Below, one piece after another: positions 19,336 to 35,978 of a DNA stretch of 64,000 nucleotides (position 1 is its first letter; each line of letters starts with the position of its first letter). The stretch is from Ranitomeya imitator (taxonomy: Eukaryota). The stretch is from contig NC_091288.1 of the NCBI RefSeq assembly GCF_032444005.1, positions 179,180,001 to 179,244,000 of the forward strand, read 5' to 3'. A program made the position numbers and the translations under genes. Below the pieces are notes generated by a model. The model made no database searches, was not told the origin of the DNA, and was given only the letters and a program-made list of their open reading frames with translations.

Positions 19336-20576
19336 CCCCTTTCTGACCTCGGACGGGATAGTACGTCCGAGGTCAGAAGCCCCGCTTTGATGCTGGCTCC
19401 GGCGGTGAGCCCGCACCAAAGCCGGGACATGTCAGCTATTTTGAACAGCTGACATGTGCCCGTAATAGGCGCGAGCAGAATCGCGATCTGCCCGCGCCTA
19501 TTAACTAGTTAAATGCCGCTGTCAAACGCAGACAGTGGCATTTAACTACCGCATCCGGCCGGGCGGCCGGAAATGACGTCATCGCCGACCCCCGTCACAT
19601 GATCGGAGGTCGGCGATGCTTCTCCATTGTAACCATAGAGGTCCTTGAGACCTCTATGGTTACTAATCGCCGGTAGCTGTGAGCGCCACACTGTGGTCGG
19701 CGCTCACAGCACACCTGCAATTCTGCTACATAGCAGCGAACAGCAGTGCCTGCTTCTAGCCTCCCATGGAGGCTATTAAAGCATGGCAAAAGTAAAAAAA
19801 AAAATGTGAAAAAAATAAAAAAAATATAAAAGTTTAAATCACCCCCCTTTCGCCCCAATCAAAATAAATCAATAAAAAAAAATCAAATCTACACATATTT
19901 GGTATCACCACGCTCAGAATCGCCCGATCTATCAATTAAAAAAAAGCATTCACCTGATCGCTAAACAGCGTAGCGAGAAAAAAATTAGAAACACCAGAAT
20001 TACATTTTTTTGGTCGCCGCAACATTGCATTAAAATGCAATAACGGGCGATCAAAAGAACGTATCTGCACCAAAATGCTATCATTAAAAACGTCATCTCG
20101 GCACGCAAAAAATAAGCCCTCAACCGACCCCAGATCATGAAAAGTGGAGACGCTACGAGTATCGGAAAATGGCACAATTTTTATTTATTTTTTATTAGAA
20201 AAGTTTGGAATTTTTTTTCACCACTTAGGTAAAAAAATAACCTAGTCATGTTAGGTGTCTATGAACTCGTACTGACCTGGAGAATCATAATGTCAGGTCA
20301 GTTTTAGCATTTAGTGAACCTAGCAAAAAAGCCAAACAAAAAACAAGTGTGGGATTGCACTTTTTTTGCAATTTCATCGCACTTGGAATTTTTTTCCCGT
20401 TTTCTAGTACACAACATGCTAAAACCAATGATGTCGTTCAAAAGTACAGCTCATCCTGCAAAAAATAAGCCCTCACATGGCCAAATTGACGGAAAAATAA
20501 AAAAGTTATGGCTCTGGGAAGGAGGGGAGTGAAAAACGAACACGGAAAAATGAAAAATCCCAAGGTCATGAAGGGA
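19336..20576. mobile_element. piggyBac-like non-autonomous element (1241 bp)
   Basis: TTAA-CCCCTTTCTGACC ... GGTCATGAAGGGA-TTAA; TTAA TSDs at 19332-19335 and 20577-20580; no ORF. Confidence 0.85.
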
Positions 20577-22605: not shown

Positions 22606-22960
22606 ACATAGTTATATAGATAGAAAGGTTGAAAAAAAACACATATCCATCAAGTTCAAACTGGGCGATGAGCGAGGAAAGGTACAACTATAATACATCA
22701 ACCAATCAGCCCTAAAAGACAAAAATGTTCTCTTCTGATCCTCCTGAGTGTTGATCGTCCCCATCAACATTCAGAACAAGAATTTTCTAAATGTAAATAC
22801 TATAAAAATTTATTTTATTTTCTTCTCAAAAAAGCTCATCTAAGTCTTTTTTGAAACCATCAATGGGTTCTACCATAACCAGCCCCTCAGGTAGGCTGTT
22901 GCACAGAAGGTAACGAAGGCTTGTGTCCTCTGGAGATTGAACCTTGGGCGGAATCCACAT
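22606..22960 (-). pseudogene. CR1 LINE 3' end fragment
   Basis: Minus strand encodes NSLPEGLVMVEPIDGFKK (CR1 ORF2 C-terminal-like), followed by the ttgaacttgatgg...ttttcaacc...taactatgt 3' tail. Confidence 0.75.
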
Positions 22961-23255
22961 TTCTCTGTCAAGGGAATTTTACATTAAACCTTTCAAAGCA
23001 GGGTAATTTTCCATTTTTTTCATTTTTGTTTTTTCTTCCCCTTCTTACTAGAGCCAATTTTTTTTAATGTTCTGTCCACATAGCCATGTGAGGGTTTGTT
23101 TTTTTGCAAGACGAGTTGTACTTTTCAGTGACACCATTCCTTTTATCATGCGATGCACAAGAAGTTGGGAAAAAAATTCCAAGTGTGTTTTAATTACCAA
23201 AAAAAGTGCAATTTCACAATTATTTTTTGAGCTTTTTAATTTACCATGTTCATTA

Positions 23256-23444
23256 GGCCGGGATCACAAACAGCGAGATACGTCCGAGTCTCGCTGGTTA
23301 AAACCAAGCTCTGGCACCGACACTCCGGAGCGGAGCGTGCGGCCGCATCGCAATACATGGTGCCGCACGCTCCGCTCCGGAGTGCCAGAGCTTAGTTTTA
23401 ACCAGCGAGACTCGGACGTATCTCACTGTAGTGTGACTCCGGCC
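23256..23444. mobile_element. PIF/Harbinger MITE, fold-back
   Basis: TTA TSD on both sides; TIR GGCCGGGATCACA/TGTGACTCCGGCC; largely palindromic. Confidence 0.85.
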
Positions 23445-23602
23445 TTATACGGTAAAACTGAACTGGCAATATGATTCTCCAGGTCAGTATGAATCAGATA
23501 TCAAACAAGGAAAGTTTTTTTTATTTAAATAGGGTTGTCCAATGAACAAAGTACATTTTAATCAATAAATCTTGTAATAATACTAATTTCCACATTTGGA
23601 TG

Positions 23603-24405
23603 TGTTCTGCCCATCTTAATGTGCAAAGAGTTAATTATCATGTTATTCAAGTTGTGGCCACTGGAGGTCATCAGTTGCCTACTTTTCATGTTGTTTACCA
23701 ACCTTTCCCTCCTAAGAGCAATGTCTTATGGGTTAGTTCCGCCCACATTCTTCTTGTGAAGACAAGCTTCAGTAGCCATTTTTCCTCAGATCTGCAGAGA
23801 GGCACACGTGCTCCTGTCTCGCTTGCTTTCTTACCCCTGTCCTAACGGATCTCGGTACGTTTATAAAGGTTTAATGCATCTTATGTTTGTGTTAGTATTT
23901 AAGCCTTATGCAGCTCCTATAGTCAGATATAGTTAGGCAGATGTGCTTTGCAGCTTGCAGTTAGGTTAATGTGTACTCTGCATGTAGATAGATGCATTGT
24001 TGTATAGAATAGGGCAGTGCTGTTAGAATTACTGTGTAATGCACTCTGTATAATTCTTGCTGTAATGCCCCAATTATTTATGTGATTGCACCCTGTATGT
24101 GCATATACTGAAATGCTGTTATTCTTTACAGTTTTTCACCAGTCATCCACTATGATCAGTCATCCACTATGATCAGTCATCCACTATAATTATTCACTGA
24201 ACATCCACTTTGTACATCAACATCATTCACTATTCGATCATCTACTATGAATACTGTCCACCATTGTTCAACGTTATAGTTTTGGTTATCATCACCCTAA
24301 TAAATAAGACTTAAGCATCAACACAGTCTGTTTACTGGGATGTGGATGAAGGTTTAGCCGTATGTTAGAATCCACACAGCATCCTACGTGGAGGAAGACA
24401 GAACA
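23603..24405 (+). repeat. 5' LTR of BEL element (803 bp)
   Basis: TGTTCTG...CAGAACA; AATAAA at 24299-24304; 3 copies of a 17-bp repeat cagtcatccactatgat; by eye 8 substitutions and one 3-bp indel versus the 3' LTR. Confidence 0.97.
23855..24131 (+). other. Predicted 277-nt GT-AG intron inside the BEL LTR (also 34239-34515)
   Basis: Donor CG|GTACGT; branch-like tactgaa; acceptor tgttattctttacAG|. Joining the exons recreates the complement of the PBS. Confidence 0.65.
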
Positions 24406-24421
24406 GTGAAAAACGAGACCG
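24406..24421 (+). promoter_or_regulatory. Non-canonical primer-binding site GTGAAAAACGAGACCG
   Basis: Abuts the 5' LTR and lacks the TGG needed to pair a tRNA CCA end; complementary to the spliced LTR junction. Confidence 0.7.
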
Positions 24422-24690
24422 CCAGTCGCAGGCGGTGATTGTAAAGTAAGAACAGATTAGCTGCCTTCAGTGAAACTGATAGCCGGTCGCAGGCTGTAGT
24501 TGATCAGACTGTATGGAACCGCTAACACCCACACTGCTCCGCATTCGGGTATCACAGCAGCCGCCATACAGCCGCAGGACTATACTGCAGCCCGCCAAGA
24601 GGAGCTACATCATTCCCGCCACGTGGAAGCTCACCGCACATAGACTCAGTTTCCCGCCAAAACACTCAGCAGTACGCAGCTAAGTGCACA

Positions 24691-25325
24691 ATGTCTCGAA
24701 ACAGCACATCCTCACTCAAGACGAGGTCACGAGCAAGCTCTAGCAGGTCATCATTAGCAGAGCTGGCTGCTGTCGCTCGTGCTGAAGCTGAAGCAGCCAA
24801 AGCGAGGTCTTCCTTCGCCGAGAAAGAAATGCATCTAAAGCTGAGACAAGCAGAGCATGCAGCAGAAAATGTACGTTTGCAGGCTGAAACCGCACGTTTG
24901 CGGGCAGAGCAAGAAGCAGAAGGTGCGCGCCTGCAAGTGTCTCTAGAAAGACTTATGGTAGACAAAGAGGCAGCAGCTGCAATAGCTAAGGCAGAGTACT
25001 TGGAAGCCATGAAGGATCCTGATTATGAGGGACGCAGCAACGTTCTTGGAACAGATCTAGAGCAGCAAGATCCAGCTCAGCGCGTCGCAGAGTACGTTCA
25101 TCGACACTCCAGCATGGACAACACCCTCGACAGACTACGGAAGAGAGCAAACCTCAGGATGTCAGTAAGCAGTGTCCTCTACACAGGAAACCACATCCTC
25201 TACTAAAGTGCAGAGCCTTCAGGGAGAAGACTTTAGAGGATCGCAAAGGTTTCCTCAAGGAAAACAACATCTGCTTCAAATGCTGTGCTACGACCTCTCA
25301 CTTCGCCAGGAACTGTGGAGCTAGC
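24691..25325 (+). pseudogene. BEL gag: N-terminus fused out of frame to the C-terminal Cys-His knuckles (central gag deleted)
   Basis: Ser/Ala-rich coiled-coil start (MSRNSTSS...ARAEAEAAKAR). From ~25146 another frame gives QCPLHRKPH...CFKCCATTSHFARNC...CAECSSTDHNTALH. Confidence 0.85.
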
Positions 25326-27521
25326 GTGAAATGTGCAGAATGCAGCAGCACGGATCACAATACAGCCTTGCATTCTGGACCACCTCCAGGAGTGTTGTCA
25401 CAAGCAGAGGAGCACGATGAGAAACAGAAGAACACCGTCGAAGACACCCCTGCGGTCACCTCTCAATGTACGGAGATCTGTAAGGGACTCAAGGGAGGAA
25501 GATCCTGCTCAAAAATCTGCCTTGTCCGAGTCTATCCAACAGGCCACAGAGACAAAGCGCTCAAGATATATGCAATCCTAGATGACCAAAGTAATAGGTC
25601 TTTAGCCAGGTCCATCTTCTTTGATAACTTCAACATTGTAGGCCCCGGTTCTCCCTACTCCCTTAGGACATGTTCAGGTACCGTCGAGACGGCGGGGAGG
25701 AAAGCAACCGGATACAAAGTGGAGTCCATGGATGGCCAGGCCTGTCTGTCACTACCGACCATCCTGGAGTGCAACCAGATTCCTGACAACAGGTCTGAGA
25801 TACCTTCACCAGAGGTGGCAACGTATCACCCCCACCTGAAGCATATAGCCCACCTGATACCTGAGTTGGAACCAGAAGCGCCAATAGCTTTACTTCTGGG
25901 AAGAGATATACTACGAGTCCACAAGACTAGAGAATATATCAACGGCTCACGGAATGCTCCATACGCGCAGAGGCAAGACCTTGGATGGGTCATTGTAGGA
26001 GATGTCTGTCTAGGAGGAGCACACAAGCCGGTCTCAGTCAACAGTATGCTTACCAGCACACTAGAAAATGGACGTCCATCTCTCTTCCAGCCGTGTCACA
26101 ATAGTCTGCTGGTAAAGGAACTACCGAGCAGCACTCCCCTACCTTGCCCTTTCTCAGTTCCTATCAACGAAGACCACGCCTGTGAAGGTGAACAAGACCA
26201 CATAGGATGTACAGTCTTCCACAGGACGAAGGAAGACAACAATTTAGCGATGTCTATAGAAGACAAGATATTCCTGGACATCATGGACGAACAAATAGTC
26301 AAGGATACGTCGAATAGTTGGGTTGCACCTCTACCATTTCGACCTCAGAGGAGATGCCTACACAACAACAAGGAATTGGCCTACAGCAGATTCATCTACC
26401 TAAGACACAAGCTTCAGAAGTCACCTGAGACGAAGGCACATTTCTTTACCTTCATGGGAAAGATATTCCAGAACAACCACGCAGAGATTGCACCTGCACT
26501 TCGACACGGAGAGGAGTGTTGGTACCTGCCCATCTTCGGAGTGTACCATCCTAAGAAGCCAGGTCAAATTAGAGTGGTATTCGACTCAAGTGCCAAATGC
26601 GAAGACGTGTCATTGAATGATGTCTTACTGTCGGGCCCAGACCTCAACAACAGACTTCTGGAAGTATTACTCTGTTTCCGTAGAGATTCAGTGGCATTTA
26701 TGGCTGACATACAACAGATGTTCCACTGTTTTCTCGTCAAAGAGGAACACAGAAACTACCTGAGGTTCTTCTGGTACCGTGACAACGACCCGGACGAAGA
26801 CATCGCAGAGTACCGGATGCGGGTACACATCTTTGGGAACAGTCCTTCCCCAGCGGTCGCAATCTACGACCTCCGACATTCTGCCAAAATGGGTGAAGAA
26901 GAGTATGGCTCGGACGTCAGGTCCTTTGTGGAAAAGGATTTTTACGTGGATGACTGTTTGAAGTCCACACCGACAAGTGAGGCCGCAATCAGTCTACTAA
27001 AGAGGACTCGTGACATGCTCGCCCAGTCTAACCTAAGGTTACACAAGATTTCTTCCAACAGCCGAGAGTTGATGGAAGCCTTTCCCTCTGAAGACTATTC
27101 TAGCGATCTAAATGATTTAGACCTCAGCATCGACCCCCTTCCCATGCAGCGGAACCTTGGATTGCTGTGGGACCTGAAGACAGATACCTTCACCTTTCAG
27201 ATCAGCAAGGATGAGAAACCCTTCATGCGCAGAGGAGTTCTTTCCTTCGTGAATAGTTTATACGACCGCTTGGGGTTCGTAGCTCCAGTAACCATCCAAG
27301 GGAAGCTGATGCTCAGGGACTTCACCCAAGACACTACTGATTGGGATGATCCACTTCCAGCAGAAAAGGCTGACCTGTGGGCAGAGTGGAGGAAGTCTCT
27401 TGAAGCCCTGACCAACCTTCGTGTGAAACGACCATATGCTCCTGTGCCATCCACAGAGGTCAAAACGCAAACACTTTTTGTATTTTCTGTGATGCATCAG
27501 TCAAAGCGATTGCAGCAGTAG
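25326..27521 (+). CDS. BEL pol part 1: aspartic protease + reverse transcriptase
   Basis: AILDDQSNRSL (protease); WYLPIFGVYHPKKPGQIRVVFD, ADIQQMF, FGNSPSP, FYVDD (Pao RT). Frameshift near 27485 before RNase H (CDASVKAIAAVAY in the next frame). Confidence 0.95.
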   Translation: MKCAECSSTDHNTALHSGPPPGVLSQAEEHDEKQKNTVEDTPAVTSQCTEICKGLKGGRSCSKICLVRVYPTGHRDKALKIYAILDDQSNRSLARSIFFDNFNIVGPGSPYSLRTCSGTVETAGRKATGYKVESMDGQACLSLPTILECNQIPDNRSEIPSPEVATYHPHLKHIAHLIPELEPEAPIALLLGRDILRVHKTREYINGSRNAPYAQRQDLGWVIVGDVCLGGAHKPVSVNSMLTSTLENGRPSLFQPCHNSLLVKELPSSTPLPCPFSVPINEDHACEGEQDHIGCTVFHRTKEDNNLAMSIEDKIFLDIMDEQIVKDTSNSWVAPLPFRPQRRCLHNNKELAYSRFIYLRHKLQKSPETKAHFFTFMGKIFQNNHAEIAPALRHGEECWYLPIFGVYHPKKPGQIRVVFDSSAKCEDVSLNDVLLSGPDLNNRLLEVLLCFRRDSVAFMADIQQMFHCFLVKEEHRNYLRFFWYRDNDPDEDIAEYRMRVHIFGNSPSPAVAIYDLRHSAKMGEEEYGSDVRSFVEKDFYVDDCLKSTPTSEAAISLLKRTRDMLAQSNLRLHKISSNSRELMEAFPSEDYSSDLNDLDLSIDPLPMQRNLGLLWDLKTDTFTFQISKDEKPFMRRGVLSFVNSLYDRLGFVAPVTIQGKLMLRDFTQDTTDWDDPLPAEKADLWAEWRKSLEALTNLRVKRPYAPVPSTEVKTQTLFVFSVMHQSKRLQQ

Positions 27522-28795
27522 CGTACCTCGAATCCACAGACGTAAGTGGACAATGCCATATCGGGTTCGTTATGAGCCGGACGAAATTGGCGCCACTTCG
27601 TGAACACACGATACCCAGACTGGAACTCTGTGCTGCTGTCCTCGCAGTTGAGACGGCCGAACTGATCTCGGATGCGATGAGCCTGAAGATCAAGGATGCA
27701 GAGTTCTACACCGATAGCAAGGTGGTGCTGGGGTACATCTGTAACAAGACACGACGCTTCTACGTCTACGTCAGCAACCGGGTACTTCGGGTAAGAAGAT
27801 CCACCGACCCTAATCAGTGGCACTACGTACCTACTCACCACAATCCTGCGGACCACGCGACTAGATCCGTTGCACCCAGTCATCTGAAGGACACTTCTTG
27901 GTTCACAGGTCCTACCTCTTTGTACCGTTCGATGCCCCACATCAGCAGGCCTGAAACTTTCGAACTAGTGGGTCCAGACACAGACGAAGAGATCCGACCT
28001 CAAGTGTCTGCTCTACATACAGAGATTTCAAGCTGCCACCTCGAATCTCACCGGTTCAGCAGGTTCTCCACCTGGAAGTCACTTGTTCGAGCTATAGCTT
28101 GTCTATTTCATGTAACCCAGTCCTACAAGTCAGCACTACCTGATAGCCAGAGACGTTGTAAAGGTTGGCATCACTGCAGGGTTGCGTTTACTGCTCCCAA
28201 CCTGGAAAGAGCCAAGGTTATAATACTTCGTGCCATACAAAGAGAAACCTATGGCAGAGAAATAGACAACCTCAACAAGGGACAACCCATTCCTGAGGTC
28301 AGTGGGCTGAGGAAGCTCGATCCGATTGTCGATCAAGAAGGGCTGCTGAGAGTCGGTGGCCGTCTTCAAGAAGCTGAGGTAGAAGTTTCAGAGAAGCACC
28401 CGGTGATAATTCCTGGACGTCATCACGTAACAACCCTGCTGATTCAACACCATCATGTCTTGGTGAGACACCAAGGCCGTTTGTTCACTAAAGGAAACCT
28501 AAGGGCAGCTGGACTATGGATAGTTGGAGCTAAGAGAAGAGTGAGCAAACTCATCTTCGACTGTGTTACGTGTTGCAAACTCCGGGGCACATTCCAAAAT
28601 CCGAAGATGGCCAATCTTCCACCCGACAGACTCAGTTCTGAACCTCCCTTCACCAACGTTGGACTAGATGTATTCGGTCCTTGGTCTGTGGCTACACGAC
28701 GGACTAGAAAAATACTTACGGAAGCAAAGTGTTGGGCGGTTCTATTCACGTGTCTGTCCGTCAGAGCCGTTCATATCGAAGTAATCGAATCGATG
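27500..28795 (+). pseudogene. BEL pol part 2: RNase H, integrase HHCC and first catalytic Asp
   Basis: KLAP, IPRLELCAA, YTDSKVVLGYI, HPVIIP...HH...H...C..C, VGLDVFGP, AVHIEVIESM; then interrupted by repeat DNA. Confidence 0.93.
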
Positions 28796-29934
28796 GGGCA
28801 GATTGCCATGGGGCAGATTGCTGGACACACTGGGGCAATACTGGAGACCATGGGGCAAAATGCTGGACACACTGGGGCAATACTGGAGACCATGGGGCAG
28901 AATGCTGGACACACCGGGGCAATACTGGAGACCATGGGGCAGATTGCTGGACACACTGGGGCAATACTGGAGACCATGGGGCAGAATGCTGGACACACCG
29001 GGGCAATACTGGAGACCATGGGGCAAATTGCTGGGGCACACTGGGGCAATACTGAAGACCATGGGGCAGAATGCTGGACACAATGGGGCAATACTGGAGA
29101 CCATGGGGCAGAATGCTGGACACACTGGGGCAATGCAGGAGACCATGGGGCAGATTGCTGGACACACTGGGGCAATACAGGAGACCATGGGGCAGATTGC
29201 TGGACACACTGGGGCAGATTGCTGGACACACTGGGGGTAATATGCTGGACACACTGGGGGTAATATGCTGGACACACTGGGGGTAATATGCTGGACACAC
29301 TGGGGCAGACTGCTGGACACACTGGGGCAATGCTGGACACTGGGGCAGATTGCTGGACACACTGGGGCAATGCTGGACACTGGGGCAGATTGCTGGACAC
29401 ACTGGGAGTAATATGCTGGACACACTGGGGCAGATTGCTGCACAACATGGGGGTAATATGCTGGACACACTGGGGCAGATTGCTGGACACACTGGGGGCA
29501 GGACTTGGGGCATGATTGGAGACATGGGGCAGGATTGGATCATGGGGCAGGACGGATACGATGGAGGCTGGTGGGGCAGGATGGGGAGATCATATGGGGT
29601 AGAATGGATAGTCATGAGTGCAGGATACGAGAACATATGGCTGGAGCCAGGAATGAGATAAACGGGGCCAGGGTGGGGAATAGTGTTACCATAGGGGCTA
29701 ATTAAGGGATATTATTAATGCAGTAATGTATTTATTTTATTTTTTGAGTATACTGTTTTAAATGGGGGGGCGGTACTGTTATTGTGCAAAGTGACACTAT
29801 ATCGCCTTTTTGTCTTCATGTGGTGTAATGTAGAAGTTGTGAAAAATTAAGTAATGTGTTCTGCAAGCGGAGCTCGAGATAACTGTGTTATTTCCTGCAG
29901 AGACGAGTCCTGGCTGGAAGGAATGATGGCGGTC
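28793..29934 (-). repeat. Inverted copy of the internal segment 30549-31697 of the adjacent hAT element
   Basis: Reverse complement matches, including the diagnostic order of variant minisatellite units; no TIRs or TSD of its own. Confidence 0.93.
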
Positions 29935-29976
29935 AAGTTTTATAAACGCACTTCGACGCTTCATCGCAATCAGAGG
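29933..29976 (+). pseudogene. Isolated 44-bp integrase segment (SSFINALRRFIAIRG)
   Basis: Fills the gap between ...IESM and IRGPVKHIRSDRGTNF of the integrase core. Confidence 0.9.
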
Positions 29977-32900
29977 CAGAGGCGTAGCTAGAGCTTTTGC
30001 CGCCCGGGGCTGTTCCCGAGTTTGGCGCCCCCCCCCCCCCCCCGGCTCAATACACACAAAGGTTACCAAAAATGGTTTTCCTGTTTTGTAGAACTTAAAC
30101 TGGGCCTAATGGTGTCACCCCCACATGCCAAACCTGTGACTTAATACCACCACACCATGACCAGACCACATAGTGACCGAATAATACTACATACAAGGGA
30201 CAAATACCACAACACCATTTCCAGACCACATATTACCACCACATAGTGACTGAATACTACAATACTGATCAGTAATAAAAAAAAAAACACAATACTATCA
30301 CCATAAGTGCCAGTATTCACAGGAGATCTGTACTTAGTATGCAGTGTCTGTGTAGAGGTAATACAGAGATCACTGGTGGTATTATACACAGGAACTCTGT
30401 ATATAATGTATAGGTAATACAGTGATCACTGGTGACATTGTACACAGGACCGCTGTATATAGTATACAGTGTATAGTGTCAGTGTTTAGGTAACACTGAC
30501 TCACCAGTGACGTCTCTAGGTGAAGTCCTTCATCTTTCATCCAGCACAGACCGCCATCATTCCTTCCAGCCAGGACTCGTCTCTGCAGGAAATAACACAG
30601 TTATCTCGAGCTCCGCTTGCAGAACACATTACTTAATTTTTCACAACTTCTACATTACACCACATGAAGACAAAAAGGCGATATAGTGTCACTCTGCACA
30701 ATAACAGTACCGCCCCCCCATTTAAAACAGTATACTCAAAAAATAAAATAAATACATCACTGCAGTAATAATATCCCTTAATTAGCCCCTATGGTAACAC
30801 TATTCCCCACCCTGGCCCCGTTTATCTCATTCCTGGCTCCAGCCATATGTTCTCGTATCCTGCACTCATGACTATCCATTCTACCCCATATGATCTCCCC
30901 ATCCTGCCCCACCAGCCTCCATCGTATCCGTCCTGCCCCATGATCCAATCCTGCCCCATGTCTCCAATCATGCCCCAAGTCCTGCCCCCAGTGTGTCCAG
31001 CAATCTGCCCCAGTGTGTCCAGCATATTACCCCCATGTTGTCCAGCAATCTGCCCCAGTGTGTCCAGCATATTACTCCCAGTGTGTCCAGCAATCTGCCC
31101 CAGTGTCCAGCATTGCCCCAGTGTGTCCAGCAATCTGCCCCAGTGTCCAGCATTGCCCCAGTGTGTCCAGCAGTCTGCCCCAGTGTGTCCAGCATATTAC
31201 CCCCAGTGTGTCCAGCATATTACCCCCAGTGTGTCCAGCATATTACCCCCAGTGTGTCCAGCATATTACCCCCAGTGTGTCCAGCAATCTGCCCCAGTGT
31301 GTCCAGCAATCTGCCCCATGGTCTCCTGTATTGCCCCAGTGTGTCCAGCAATCTGCCCCATGGTCTCCTGCATTGCCCCAGTGTGTCCAGCATTCTGCCC
31401 CATGGTCTCCAGTATTGCCCCATTGTGTCCAGCATTCTGCCCCATGGTCTTCAGTATTGCCCCAGTGTGTCCAGCAATTTGCCCCATGGTCTCCAGTATT
31501 GCCCCGGTGTGTCCAGCATTCTGCCCCATGGTCTCCAGTATTGCCCCAGTGTGTCCAGCAATCTGCCCCATGGTCTCCAGTATTGCCCCGGTGTGTCCAG
31601 CATTCTGCCCCATGGTCTCCAGTATTGCCCCAGTGTGTCCAGCATTCTGCCCCATGGTCTCCAGTATTGCCCCAGTGTGTCCAGCAATCTGCCCCATGGT
31701 CTCCAGTATTGCCCCAGTGTGTCCAGCAATCTGCCCCATGGTCTCCAGTATTGCCCCAGTGTGTCCAGCAATCTGCCCCATGGTCTCCAGTATTGCCCCG
31801 GTGTGTCCAGCAATCTGCCCCATGGTCTCCAGTATTGCCCCGGTGTGTCCAGCATTCTGCCCCATGGTCTCCAGTATTGCCCCAGTGTGTCCAGCAATCT
31901 GCCCCATGGTCTCCAGTATTGCCCCGGTGTGTCCAGCATTCTGCCCCATGGTCTCCAGTATTGCCCCAGTGTGTCCAGCATTCTGCCCCATGGTCTCCAG
32001 TATTGCCCCAGTGTGTCCAGCAATCTGCCCCATGGTCTCCAGTATTGCCCCAGTGTGTCCAGCAATCTGCCCCATGGTCTCCAGTATTGCCCCGGTGTGT
32101 CCAGCATTCTGCCCCATGGTCTCCAGTATTGCCCCAGTGTGTCCAGAAATCTGCCCCATGGTCTCCAGTATTGCCCCGGTGTGTCCAGCATTCTGCCCCA
32201 TGGTGTCCAGTATTGCCCCAGTGTGTCCAGCAATCTGCCCCATGGTCTCCAGTATTGCCCCGGTGTGTCCAGCATTCTGCCCCATGGTCTCCAGTATTGC
32301 CCCAGTGTGTCCAGCAATCTGCCCCATGGTCTCCAGTATTGCCCCGGTGTGTCCAGCATTCTGCCCCATGGTCTCCAGTATTGCCCCAGTGTGTCCAGCA
32401 ATCTGCCCCATGGTCTCCAGTATTGCCCCAGTGTGTCCAGCAATCTGCCCCATGGTCTCCAGTATTGCCCCAGTGTGTCCAGCAATCTGCCCCATGGTTT
32501 CCAGTATTGCCCCGTTGTGTCCAGCAATCTGCCCCATGGTCTCCAGTATTGCCCCAGTGTGTCCAGCAATCTGCCCCATGGTCTCCAGTATTGCCCCAGT
32601 GTGTCCAGCAATCTGCCCCATGGTCTCCAGTTTTGCCCCAGTGTGTCCAGCAATCTGCCCCATGGTCTCCTGTATTGCCCCAGTGTGTCCAGCAATCTGC
32701 CCCATGGTCTCCTGTATTGCCCCAGTGTGTCCAGCATTCTGCCCCATGGTCTCCAGTATTGCCCCATTGTGTCCAGCATTCTGCCCCATGGTCTTCAGTA
32801 TTGCCCCCAGAGTCAGACATAAAGAAAAAAAAAAAAAAGTTAAATCCTCACCTCTCCCGTTCCTAGTGCAGGTCCGGTGCAGTCAGCGTCTCTCCGGCTC

Positions 32901-33216
32901 TGCGACGCTCAGGACAGAGAGGTTGAGCGGCGCGCACAGTAGTGACGTCATCGCGCCCTCTGCTCTGAGACGTCGCAGAGTCAGAGGACGCTGTAGCTGC
33001 CGGCGCCGCAGGAACCAGGAGAGGTGAGTATTAGAGCGGGGGGCGGGGGCCCAGGGGCGGGGGGAGCCTGGTCGTGGCGGCGGACGGCGCCGCCCGAAGA
33101 TTTAAAGGGGCGTCTTTTTTTTTTTTTTTCTTTCTCCTGCAGCGCCGGCCGCCCCCCGCATTGTGCCGCCCGGGGCGGACCGCCCCCCCCCCCGCACCCC
33201 CCTTCCTACGCCACTG
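29977..33216. mobile_element. Non-autonomous hAT element (3240 bp) inserted in the BEL integrase
   Basis: TIR CAGAGGCGTAGC / CCTACGCCACTG; perfect 8-bp TSD ATCAGAGG (29969-29976, 33217-33224). Confidence 0.96.
30985..32808. repeat. Minisatellite: ~20-22 bp units followed by ~36 copies of a 42-bp unit
   Basis: Unit atggtctccagtattgccccagtgtgtccagcaatctgcccc; stop-free, hence the overlapping long ORFs. Confidence 0.98.
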
Positions 33217-33972
33217 ATCAGAGGACCTGTGAAGCATATTCGTTCTGACCGAGGTACGAATTTCGTCGGAGCGGCAAGAGAACTCCAAATCCCTTCCAAT
33301 CTGGACATCGATAATGTGGAAAGGTATCTAGGTGAGCAAGTATGTACCTGGACCTTCAATCCACCACACTCTTCGCACATGGGAGGTGCGTGGGAAAGGA
33401 TGATAGGGATAGCACACAGAATATTAGACTCTATCTTCTTGCAAGCTAACACCAGACTTACACAAGAGAGTTTATCCACGTTCTTGGCAGAGGTCTCAGC
33501 CATCATGAATGCCAGGCCACTGACAGCACTTTCTAGTGATTCTGGAGATCCATCCATCCTTACTCCTGCAATGTTACTCACACAGAAAACCTGTGTCCCG
33601 AAAGCTCCACTCGGAGAATTCAATGACAAAGATCTCTACAGACGACAATGGAGGCAGGTACAAAGCGTGTCCAACGTCTTCTGGAATAGATGGAGGAAAC
33701 AGTATCTTTCCACTCTGCAAAGCAGGACAAAGTGGCAGAAAGACCGCCCAAACATTCAATCTGGCGATGTTGTACTCGTCAAAGACAGTCAGTCACATCG
33801 GAACGAGTGGCCACTCGGCCTAGTCATTAAGACCCTGCCCAGTAAAGATGGGAAAGTGCGGAAAGTAGAGGTCAGAGTGTGCAAGCTTGGAGAAAACAAA
33901 CTGTTCCTCAGACCCGTTACCGAGCTTGTATTATTATTTTCCCCAAAAGAACCTAATTGTGGCATCTGTTGA
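33217..33972 (+). pseudogene. BEL pol part 3: integrase core and C-terminal domain
   Basis: IRSDRGTNFVGA, GGAWERMIG, FWNRWRKQYL, WPLGLV...DGKVRKVEV...RPVTELVLL. Confidence 0.95.
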
Positions 33973-33974
33973 CG

Positions 33975-33986
33975 CCAAGCGGGGAG
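33975..33986 (+). promoter_or_regulatory. Polypurine tract
   Basis: gccaagcggggag immediately 5' of the 3' LTR TG. Confidence 0.75.
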
Positions 33987-34792
33987 TGTTCTGCCCATCT
34001 TAATGTGCAAAGAGTTAATTATCATGTTATTCAAGTTGTGGCCACTGGAGGTCATCAGTTGCCTACTTTTCATGTTGTTTACCAACCTTTCCCTCCTAAG
34101 AGCAATGTCTTATGGGTTAGTTCCGCCCACATTCTTCTTGTGAAGACAAGCTTCAGTAGCCATTTTTCCTCAGATCTGCAGAGAGGCACACGTGCTCCTG
34201 TCTCGCTTACTTTCTTACCCCTGTCCTAACGGATCTCGGTACGTTTATAAAGGTTTAATGCATCTTATGTTTGTGTTAGTATTTAAGCCTTATGCAGCTC
34301 CTATAGTCAGATATAGTTAGGCAGATGTGCTTTGCAGCTTGCAGTTAGGTTCAGGTGTACTCTGCATGTAGATAGATGCATTCTTGTATAGAATAGGGCA
34401 GTGCTGTTAGAATTACTGTGTAATGCACTCTGTATAATTCTTGCTGTAATGTCCCAGTTATTTATGTGATTGCACCCTGTATGTGCATATACTGAAATGC
34501 TGTTATTCTTTACAGTTTTTCACCAGTCATCCACTATGATCAGTCATCCACTATGATCAGTCATCCACTATGATTATTCACTGAACATCCACTTTGTACA
34601 TCAACATCATTCACTATTCGATCATCTACTATGAATACTGTCCACCATTGTTGTTCAACGTTATAGTTTTGGTTATCATCACCCTAATAAATAAGACTTA
34701 AGCATCAACACAGTCTGTTTACTGGGATGTGGATGAAGGTCTAGCCGTATGTTAGAATCCACACAGCATCCTACGTGGAGGAAGACAGAACA
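33987..34792 (+). repeat. 3' LTR of BEL element (806 bp)
   Basis: Near-identical to 23603-24405; AATAAA at 34686-34691. Confidence 0.97.
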
Positions 34793-35978
34793 GGATGTGT
34801 TTAAATAAAATGTTCCTATGCTGAGATAATCTTATAAATGTGCCCCTGCTGTGTCTGACTGTACAGGAACATGGTCTGATCAGGGGAGGAAGCGAAAGAG
34901 AGAATACAGAAATTACATTAAGGGATCGCAAATAATTCCTTCTTTGAGGTAAATCATTTTTTTAAAACAGGCAAGGAAATGCTTCATCTCAATAAAAGAA
35001 TCAGCTGCGATCCCATGCTGTAGTGTCTGAATTCTCTTTTGCTTCCTCCCCTGCCCAGGAGATGTGGTATGATCAGACTATGTTCCTGTACAGTCAGACA
35101 CAGCAGGGGCACATTTATAAGATTATCTCAGCCCAATGCAATGCTGCCATCTGACCATTATTGTTCATTGTCCTGATTGTGGGCTCATTAACATTTAATT
35201 TACCTAATGAGAGAGAGGCCTTTAGTTGCTTAGAGGTTACCATGGGTTCTTTTCTGATATTACAGACTATAATACATTAAACAATTTCATTAAACAATGT
35301 TGATCCAGCACTCTTGGGGAGGCTAACAATAGTCTTTGACTTCCTCCATTTAATATGTGCTAACCTCTAAGCTGGAGGATAAAAAAGTGCTTGTAATATC
35401 AAATATATTAAAATGATTTGCTTTATTAACTCAATAAATATACAAAATATTCACAAAGGATCTCCTGCCTAGAGAAAAACCGCTTCTCTTCTATTGTATA
35501 GGTGTCTATTATTGACAGTTTACAATCAAAGCACACACCTAAGAATAATAGTCCATATTTACAATATTAACCATTAATATTATACCAATCATTAAATAAT
35601 TAATTAATAATATGGTAAGAATATCGAATTCAGGCAATATACTGTTAATGTATTTACTTATGTCCAATGGCACATGGGTGAAACCAGATACGGATTGGGG
35701 CTGAAATTCAGTCCTGGCATTTGAAATCAGACAGGCCCATGTTGTCCCCGTCCCCATGAACCAGATGGGATATTTTACTAATTTTACCCTGTTATTACAA
35801 AATCCACCCAAGGATAAGGGAGTGAACAAGTAAATGTTAAAAAACAAGTTTTTATTTTATTAAATCAGTAACATGATAAAAAATGAATAAAATGTTTAAG
35901 AGAGATGCAGGATTGAAAAAAAAGGGACGTAGAACTCAAAAATAATAATAATTGCTGCTTGGTAAAAAAAAAAATGTT

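Follow-up and report, generated by a model that had tools for sequence, protein, structure and literature searches.

A 64,000-nucleotide (nt) stretch of the genome of the frog Ranitomeya imitator (NCBI RefSeq assembly GCF_032444005.1, contig NC_091288.1, positions 179,180,001 to 179,244,000 of the forward strand), here called the window, carries an 11.2-kb BEL/Pao retrotransposon bounded by long terminal repeats (LTRs). We propose that the clade to which this element belongs primes reverse transcription with its own spliced LTR RNA and not with a host tRNA; we put the probability of this reading at about 0.62. That self-priming of some kind operates in this BEL/Pao clade appears likely. The proposal draws on the placement of a split complement at splice signals, on its covariation with the primer-binding site (PBS) across related families, and on a joined form of the LTR in public sequencing runs.

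Directly 3′ of the 5′ LTR, which ends in ..CAGAACA at 24405, stands GTGAAAAACGAGACCG (24406–24421; all features of the window given here are on the + strand). This is the PBS, GTGAAAAACGAGA plus CCG, adjoining the LTR end. There is no TGG among these first 16 nt past the LTR, and the PBS lacks the complement of a tRNA-Arg or tRNA-Gly 3′ end that marks a tRNA-type site. Its complement lies within the LTR in two parts. The exon-1 side of the proposed primer, CGGATCTCG (CGG(A)TCTCG, 23846–23854), is followed by the donor GTACGT; the exon-2 side, TTTTTCAC (24132–24139), is preceded by the acceptor ttattctttacAG. Between them lies a 277-nt intron of spliceosomal type (23855–24131), in which a branch-like tactgaa precedes the acceptor by about 20 nt. 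Once joined, ..CGG(A)UCUCG^UUUUUCAC forms 13 base pairs (bp) with the PBS and, past a bulged A, 3 bp more: the last 5 nt of the exon-1 side are perfectly paired, and CGG pairs beyond the 1-nt bulge. At the opposite end, the last C of the exon-2 side pairs with the first base past the LTR, and the primer base after 24139 (C) faces the last A of the LTR, where pairing is impossible. The duplex has a calculated free energy of −22.9 kcal/mol when spliced, against −10.3 in the unspliced acceptor context, and the primer–PBS helix is present in the minimum-free-energy fold of the spliced leader.

An earlier note on this DNA, made from the letters alone, had read these sites as splicing-dependent self-priming, with no TGG past the 5′ LTR and with 13 nt of perfect pairing plus 3 past a bulge; a check against the sequence bears out the pairing and every coordinate. 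It had also held that both LTRs keep the splice and primer sites. In the 3′ LTR these lie at 34230–34238 (exon-1 side), 34239–34515 (intron) and 34516–34523 (exon-2 side), and the differences between the two LTRs in alignment, 8 substitutions and one 3-nt indel, all fall elsewhere. Its claim that the PBS complement is split in the unspliced LTR needs qualification: split it is, but a contiguous 9-nt part, GTTTTTCAC, exists at 24131–24139, where the G of the acceptor AG also pairs.

Shuffling the LTR by dinucleotides 2000 times never produced an anchored complement of at least 13 nt, whether contiguous or split at GT..AG, nor did any of 569 pseudo-PBS windows from the element interior have one; a chance origin of the window match is excluded. 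Other candidate primers were set aside. An 11-nt match to the PBS at about 20529–20539 is a chance one, in an unrelated A-rich repeat, and neither the 3′ end of the excised intron nor free exon 1, both of which would offer a natural 3′-OH, pairs beside the LTR boundary.

Related elements share this architecture in different sequences. Eight loci were fetched, of which seven hold an element with both LTRs, making eight elements with the window; the oyster locus (L007) has no LTR pair, and a metagenome match (L009) is a 3-kb fragment without an LTR. The LTR end is set by the target duplication in six of the seven relatives, the lamprey duplication being ambiguous. In all seven the bases past the LTR read GTRAAA.., without TGG, and GTRAAA is common to all eight elements. 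Five relatives carry a split complement. In Xenopus tropicalis (L002, post-LTR GTAAAACAACA), TGTTG then GTGAGT and tatttcAG then TTTTAC enclose an intron of 166 nt; in sardine (L003, GTGAAAAAGCA), TGCTT then GTAAGT and tatttAG then TTTCAC enclose 289 nt; in cavefish (L005, GTAAAACAACG), CGTTG then GTATGT and gtttcAG then TTTTAC enclose 206 nt. Each of these three joined primers pairs over 11 bp. The stickleback element (L008, GTAAAAAGATGA), with TCATCT then GTAAGT, cttttcAG then TTTTAC and an intron of 254 nt, reaches 12 bp. The lamprey element (L004, GTAAAAGACAC) has TGTCT then GTAAGT, ctcaccAG then TTTTAC and an intron of 467 nt, and its pairing shows a one-base slip, the PBS being one A short of a perfect match. 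Its LTRs are 96.4% identical, the mark of an older copy, and its junction is identical to the tick primer; the mismatch would most simply be a 1-nt slip in the A run of a decayed copy. In these five relatives donors fit GTRNGT, acceptors are pyrimidine-rich, and the unspliced match is 6–7 nt (free energy −2.9 to −6.6). The intron sits 5 nt into the perfectly paired stretch in all intron-bearing elements. The lizard (L001, post-LTR GTAAAACAACG) and tick (L006, GTAAAAAGACA) elements have no intron; their complements, CGTTGTTTTAC and TGTCTTTTTAC, are contiguous and pair over 11 bp each. As a separate observation, the X. tropicalis intron starts with GTGAGTGTATACAG and then a second TTTTAC (L002, 8808–8827), an acceptor-like copy of the exon-2 start 14 nt past the donor.

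Primer and PBS change together. Across seven elements, the window and its relatives with the lamprey left out, 77 of 77 bp are Watson–Crick, with compensatory double changes at 6 of the 11 primer–PBS positions. A primer matches its own PBS at 11/11 positions and the PBSs of non-matching families at 6–10 of 11. Since the LTRs are nearly unalignable between species, the common architecture is not simple sequence inheritance. The number of shuffles reaching the observed match, out of 2000 in each case, was 0 for the window, 1 for the lizard, 25 for X. tropicalis, 25 for sardine, 7 for cavefish, 4 for the tick, and 1 for stickleback. Seven of the eight have a poly(A) signal 12–170 nt past the primer; a canonical one is absent from the sardine LTR. 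On the pol tree the lizard element, which has no intron, groups as sister to that of the frog (support 100/99), and the two are nested with the intron-bearing elements of Xenopus and cavefish in one clade; most likely, therefore, the lizard lineage lost its intron. The tick element (Ornithodoros turicata, 7300–14323 of L006) has a pol 57% identical to the frog's and stands among vertebrate elements on the tree, in a placement that is not firm; horizontal transfer between ticks and vertebrates is possible.

This covariation bears on the explanation in which a host RNA is the primer (a 5′ tRNA half as in copia, or a small RNA ending ..UUUYAC) and the junction–PBS complementarity has some other role, such as folding of the leader, regulation of primer annealing, packaging or dimerisation. 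Were the primer a host RNA common to all, a constant stretch such as the GTRAAA kept in all eight PBSs would be needed. The profile of the Belpaoviridae by the ICTV, the international body for virus taxonomy, gives host-tRNA priming for the family, in which the 3′ end of tRNA-Arg or tRNA-Gly pairs with an 18-nt PBS, and calls BEL/Pao replication poorly understood (PMC8742986). In contrast to that canonical description, none of the eight elements studied carries a tRNA-type site beside the LTR. Past base 6 the PBSs vary by family, each still agreeing fully with its own LTR, and in 8/8 elements the helix ends exactly at the U5 boundary, as a purely structural helix need not. No Rfam family matches the PBS, a sub-threshold chance match aside, and ARAGORN found zero tRNA genes in the window or in any fetched locus. 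No convincing match is known between the PBS and vertebrate tRNA-Glu, tRNA-Val, tRNA-Asp or tRNA-Lys, which does not count as evidence. In Drosophila copia and its relatives, the primer is an internal fragment (the 5′ half) of initiator tRNA-Met. The frog element resembles copia in having a PBS without TGG and, as proposed here, a primer whose 3′ end would come from cleavage within a longer RNA; it differs in that the copia primer is a host tRNA fragment, the same across copies, whereas here the PBS tracks the LTR of each family. Priming by a host RNA is, in our estimate, unlikely.

The joined LTR itself is present in public sequencing runs. Contigs of these runs were placed on the LTR; such contigs do not resolve RNA starts or ends, and the run types are guessed ("RNA?") and not on record. 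In run X1 a joint with GT..AG ends leaves out exactly these 277 nt, at a depth of 28.6 joined against 38.6 unjoined; X11, from a different study, holds the exact 277-nt joint at 24.7 against 33.4. The joined form thereby makes up about 43% of molecules in these two runs, which are small and probably RNA. In X15 (2.7 Gb of contigs, genomic DNA) the joint has a depth of 393 against a summed unjoined depth of about 13,000–45,000, or about 1–3%, and for X16, from the sample of X15, no joint is listed. Enrichment of the joined form in X1 and X11 over X15 is at least 14-fold, and X11 and X15 share an organism label. Among X1, X5, X6 and X11, the ratio of LTR depth to that of the neighbouring repeat ranges from about 7 to 44, and the dominant LTR variants differ. 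Because of the enrichment over DNA and these varying depth ratios and variants, X1 and X11 are probably RNA and the joint is probably the product of splicing. With a consensus donor, a pyrimidine tract before AG and an exact joined product, the 277-nt segment has the features of a spliceosomal GT-AG intron. Exon 1 contributes 28 nt to the junction contig, which puts the upstream reach of the spliced molecules at no less than this. In the genome, a few per cent of LTR copies lack precisely the intron, the trace expected of reverse-transcribed spliced RNA. The 23854^24132 junction that the earlier note had predicted is thus found in contigs of X1, X11 and X15, and its expectation that related BEL/Pao families would show junction–PBS complementarity with compensatory covariation agrees with the comparison above; by these checks of junction and covariation, its interpretation as splicing-dependent self-priming appears supported.

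Could the joint exist in DNA only? An LTR subfamily might have lost the segment once, with no present-day splicing, and the complementarity would then be a relic of an intron-less ancestor. The joint does occur in the DNA run X15, the types of the runs are not on record, and X1 and X11 share a joined:unjoined ratio of 0.74, with flat U3/U5 depth. Yet the joined share differs by that same factor of at least 14 between X11 and X15 under one organism label, and the variant make-up and LTR:repeat depth ratios differ among X1/X11 and X5/X6, unlike the copy numbers of one genome. Moreover, five other families, with LTRs 99.7–100% identical, keep consensus splice signals and the split complement. Retention of the split in families with near-identical LTRs implies that the split state is transmitted by active elements, and we consider the purely genomic explanation quite unlikely, though possible on the frog data taken by themselves.

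A further alternative keeps self-priming and dispenses with splicing. Self-primed reverse transcription reportedly goes back to work by Levin in 1995–1996, Lin and Levin in 1997 and Butler et al. in 2001, on Tf1/Tf2 and the vertebrate sushi group (Ty3/gypsy chromoviruses). Tf1 takes as primer the contiguous first 11 nt of its mRNA, freed by an RNase H-dependent cleavage. If the frog transcript started near the acceptor (about 24131), its first 9 bases, GUUUUUCAC, would pair with the PBS in the manner of Tf1, and the exon-1 match and GT donor would be irrelevant. The contiguous 9-nt complement at 24131–24139 fits such a start, as do a TATA-like catatac about 28 nt upstream, the compact U3/R/U5 layout that would result, and the contiguous 11-mers of lizard and tick. 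It is hard to reconcile with an unspliced match of merely 6–7 nt in X. tropicalis, sardine, cavefish, stickleback and lamprey, in all five of which the missing 5–6 nt sit exactly before an upstream consensus donor, and with a junction that is physically present. We regard it as very unlikely. Chance, finally, would demand a split match drawn from many LTRs with many degrees of freedom, and although the T-rich, low-complexity LTRs of X. tropicalis and sardine do yield 11-nt split matches in 25 of 2000 shuffles, the match recurs in 7–8 independent families with different sequences and the junction is independently confirmed, so that the comparative set effectively refutes it.

In priming by spliced LTR RNA, as we picture it, the element would start minus-strand DNA from LTR RNA of its own, joined to the PBS in a duplex of about 11 bp that has its 3′ end exactly where U5 meets the PBS. 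For the families of frog, Xenopus, lamprey and the three fishes, the full primer would exist only in RNA lacking the intron. Cleavage just past 24139, the last paired base, would leave a free 3′-OH; synthesis would run through U5 and into R as far as the cut, and the strand would transfer to the matching segment of a 3′ LTR copy. With an unspliced 3′ copy as template, the intron would be rebuilt in both progeny LTRs; a spliced 3′ copy would give progeny LTRs without it. The primer might act in cis or, as the earlier note also suggested, be supplied in trans by a short LTR transcript that has been spliced. What the sequences show is the anatomy, the junction, the pairing with its covariation and the intron-less copies; we infer the priming, the cleavage, the action in cis or in trans and the transcription start, for which the earlier note had proposed 23769. 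TATA- and initiator-like motifs around exon 1 and in the introns are inconsistent between families and were not used to place the start. The model would account for a PBS that tracks its own LTR, because the plus strand of a self-primed element recopies the PBS from the primer, and its spliced 3′ template would yield both the rare intron-less frog LTRs and the intron-less lizard lineage. Whether, throughout this widespread and ancient clade of lamprey, teleost and frog elements, the host spliceosome assembles a primer that the intron splits 5|6, with splicing as an obligatory gate to retrotransposition conserved for hundreds of millions of years, is to our mind an even bet.

Several points weigh against priming by spliced RNA. 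The ratio common to X1 and X11 is also compatible with a ratio of DNA copies in another population; X5 lacks the junction, and in X6 there is only a contig break at 23854. In the molecules of the junction contig the primer is internal, unlike the 5′-end position of Tf1, and a long unmodified internal primer, exceeding the 11 nt of Tf1, complicates plus-strand transfer. The 5′ (or trans) copy must be spliced and the template 3′ copy unspliced, an asymmetry that the data leave unexplained. Lastly, the lizard and tick lineages manage without the intron, which is therefore dispensable, and the idea that splicing acts as a switch is weakened.

Set beside known systems, the frog element resembles Tf1 and the sushi group in lacking a tRNA site, in pairing about 11 nt of its own RNA with the PBS and in a helix that ends at the U5 boundary. 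Further likenesses are proposed: a cut past the paired stretch would give the 3′-OH, and the progeny primer would be recopied from the 3′ LTR. It differs in having a BEL/Pao pol and not that of a Ty3/gypsy chromovirus, in a primer that an intron splits in most families, and in frog spliced molecules that reach at least 28 nt further upstream. A published account mentions Tf1-type self-priming as hairpin priming (PMC3601003). With canonical BEL/Pao elements, the window element shares gene content, LTR ends, a 5-bp target-site duplication and a polypurine tract. Splice donors occur in R of human T-cell leukemia virus type 1 (HTLV-1), bovine leukemia virus (BLV) and foamy viruses, and an intron in plant Ogre elements; the likeness is that the host splices retroelement RNA and unspliced RNA is kept as template. 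To our knowledge, splicing in these systems makes subgenomic mRNAs or joins open reading frames (ORFs) and in none creates a primer for reverse transcription, nor do we know of any among their introns that lies wholly inside an LTR across a primer sequence. No literature on self-priming or LTR introns in BEL/Pao was found, in a search whose coverage was incomplete, so that a prior description is possible; the Sinbad paper does not discuss priming.

If the proposal is true, BEL/Pao gains a concrete, testable priming mechanism in place of an assumed dependence on tRNA, and self-priming extends from Tf1/sushi to a second superfamily. We know of no retroelement with a primer made by splicing. One would expect a spliced RNA to lose an intron located in its repeated R/LTR region, yet this one is passed on, which poses a sharp question, and the lizard and tick elements, together with the few per cent of frog copies without the intron, are natural controls for it. 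There are practical consequences as well: LTR annotation tools that seek tRNA-type PBSs will miss or misclassify such elements, and the functional splice sites of the LTR, present in thousands of genomic copies, can affect host transcripts.

Other features of the LTR and leader lie close to the primer parts. Three tandem 17-nt units (cagtcatccactatgat, 24140–24190) stand directly past the proposed cleavage point, in what would be the effective R; over these units, k-mer depth rises about threefold in every run. The LTR poly(A) signal AATAAA is at 24299–24304. A hairpin, CCGCC-AGTCGCA-GGCGG, overlaps the 3′ end of the PBS (24419–24435, by direct reading), and a related motif, AGCC-GGTCGCA-GGCT, follows at 24481–24495; the two may be leader structure or packaging signals.

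The element as a whole lies between two copies of the target-site duplication GGATG (23598–23602 and 34793–34797). Alignment of the LTRs places the 5′ LTR, TGTTCTG...CAGAACA, at 23603–24405 (803 nt) and the 3′ LTR at 33987–34792 (806 nt), the latter preceded by the polypurine tract AAGCGGGGAG (33977–33986). The internal region (24691–33972) holds broken gag-pol ORFs with Pfam matches to PF05380 (Peptidase_A17, associated with the Pao reverse transcriptase; E 9e-17 and 3e-10) and PF18701 (DUF5641, at the integrase C-terminus; E 1.5e-27), and these ORFs share 54–69% identity with annotated Pao-type proteins from frogs, fishes, a lizard and a lamprey. A 42-bp tandem repeat forms long arrays in the pol/integrase region at 28739–29258 and 31164 to about 32900; with its broken ORFs and these internal arrays, the window copy is defective. 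Summed k-mer depth over the LTR is 8,000–79,000 in X15/X16, a genome-size DNA run, and about 4–20 times that of the leader and gag. This implies a very high-copy LTR family with many solo LTRs, each with a working donor and acceptor.

Contigs of X1, X5, X11, X15 and X16 depart from the window sequence, from both sides, at about 25135–25138; at this point a 1078-nt contig of X5 carries 778 extra nt, and a contig of X6 extends 129 nt beyond 25138. The window copy thus seems to carry an internal gag deletion relative to most copies. Just upstream of the element, at 23400–23500, another repeat reaches very high depth (541–7480 in the small runs). In the sardine locus (L003, Sardina), a second, small LTR element lies beside the BEL/Pao copy at 22618–27341; its 384-nt LTRs are 100% identical and run TG..CA, and its post-LTR sequence is unrelated to GTRAAA.

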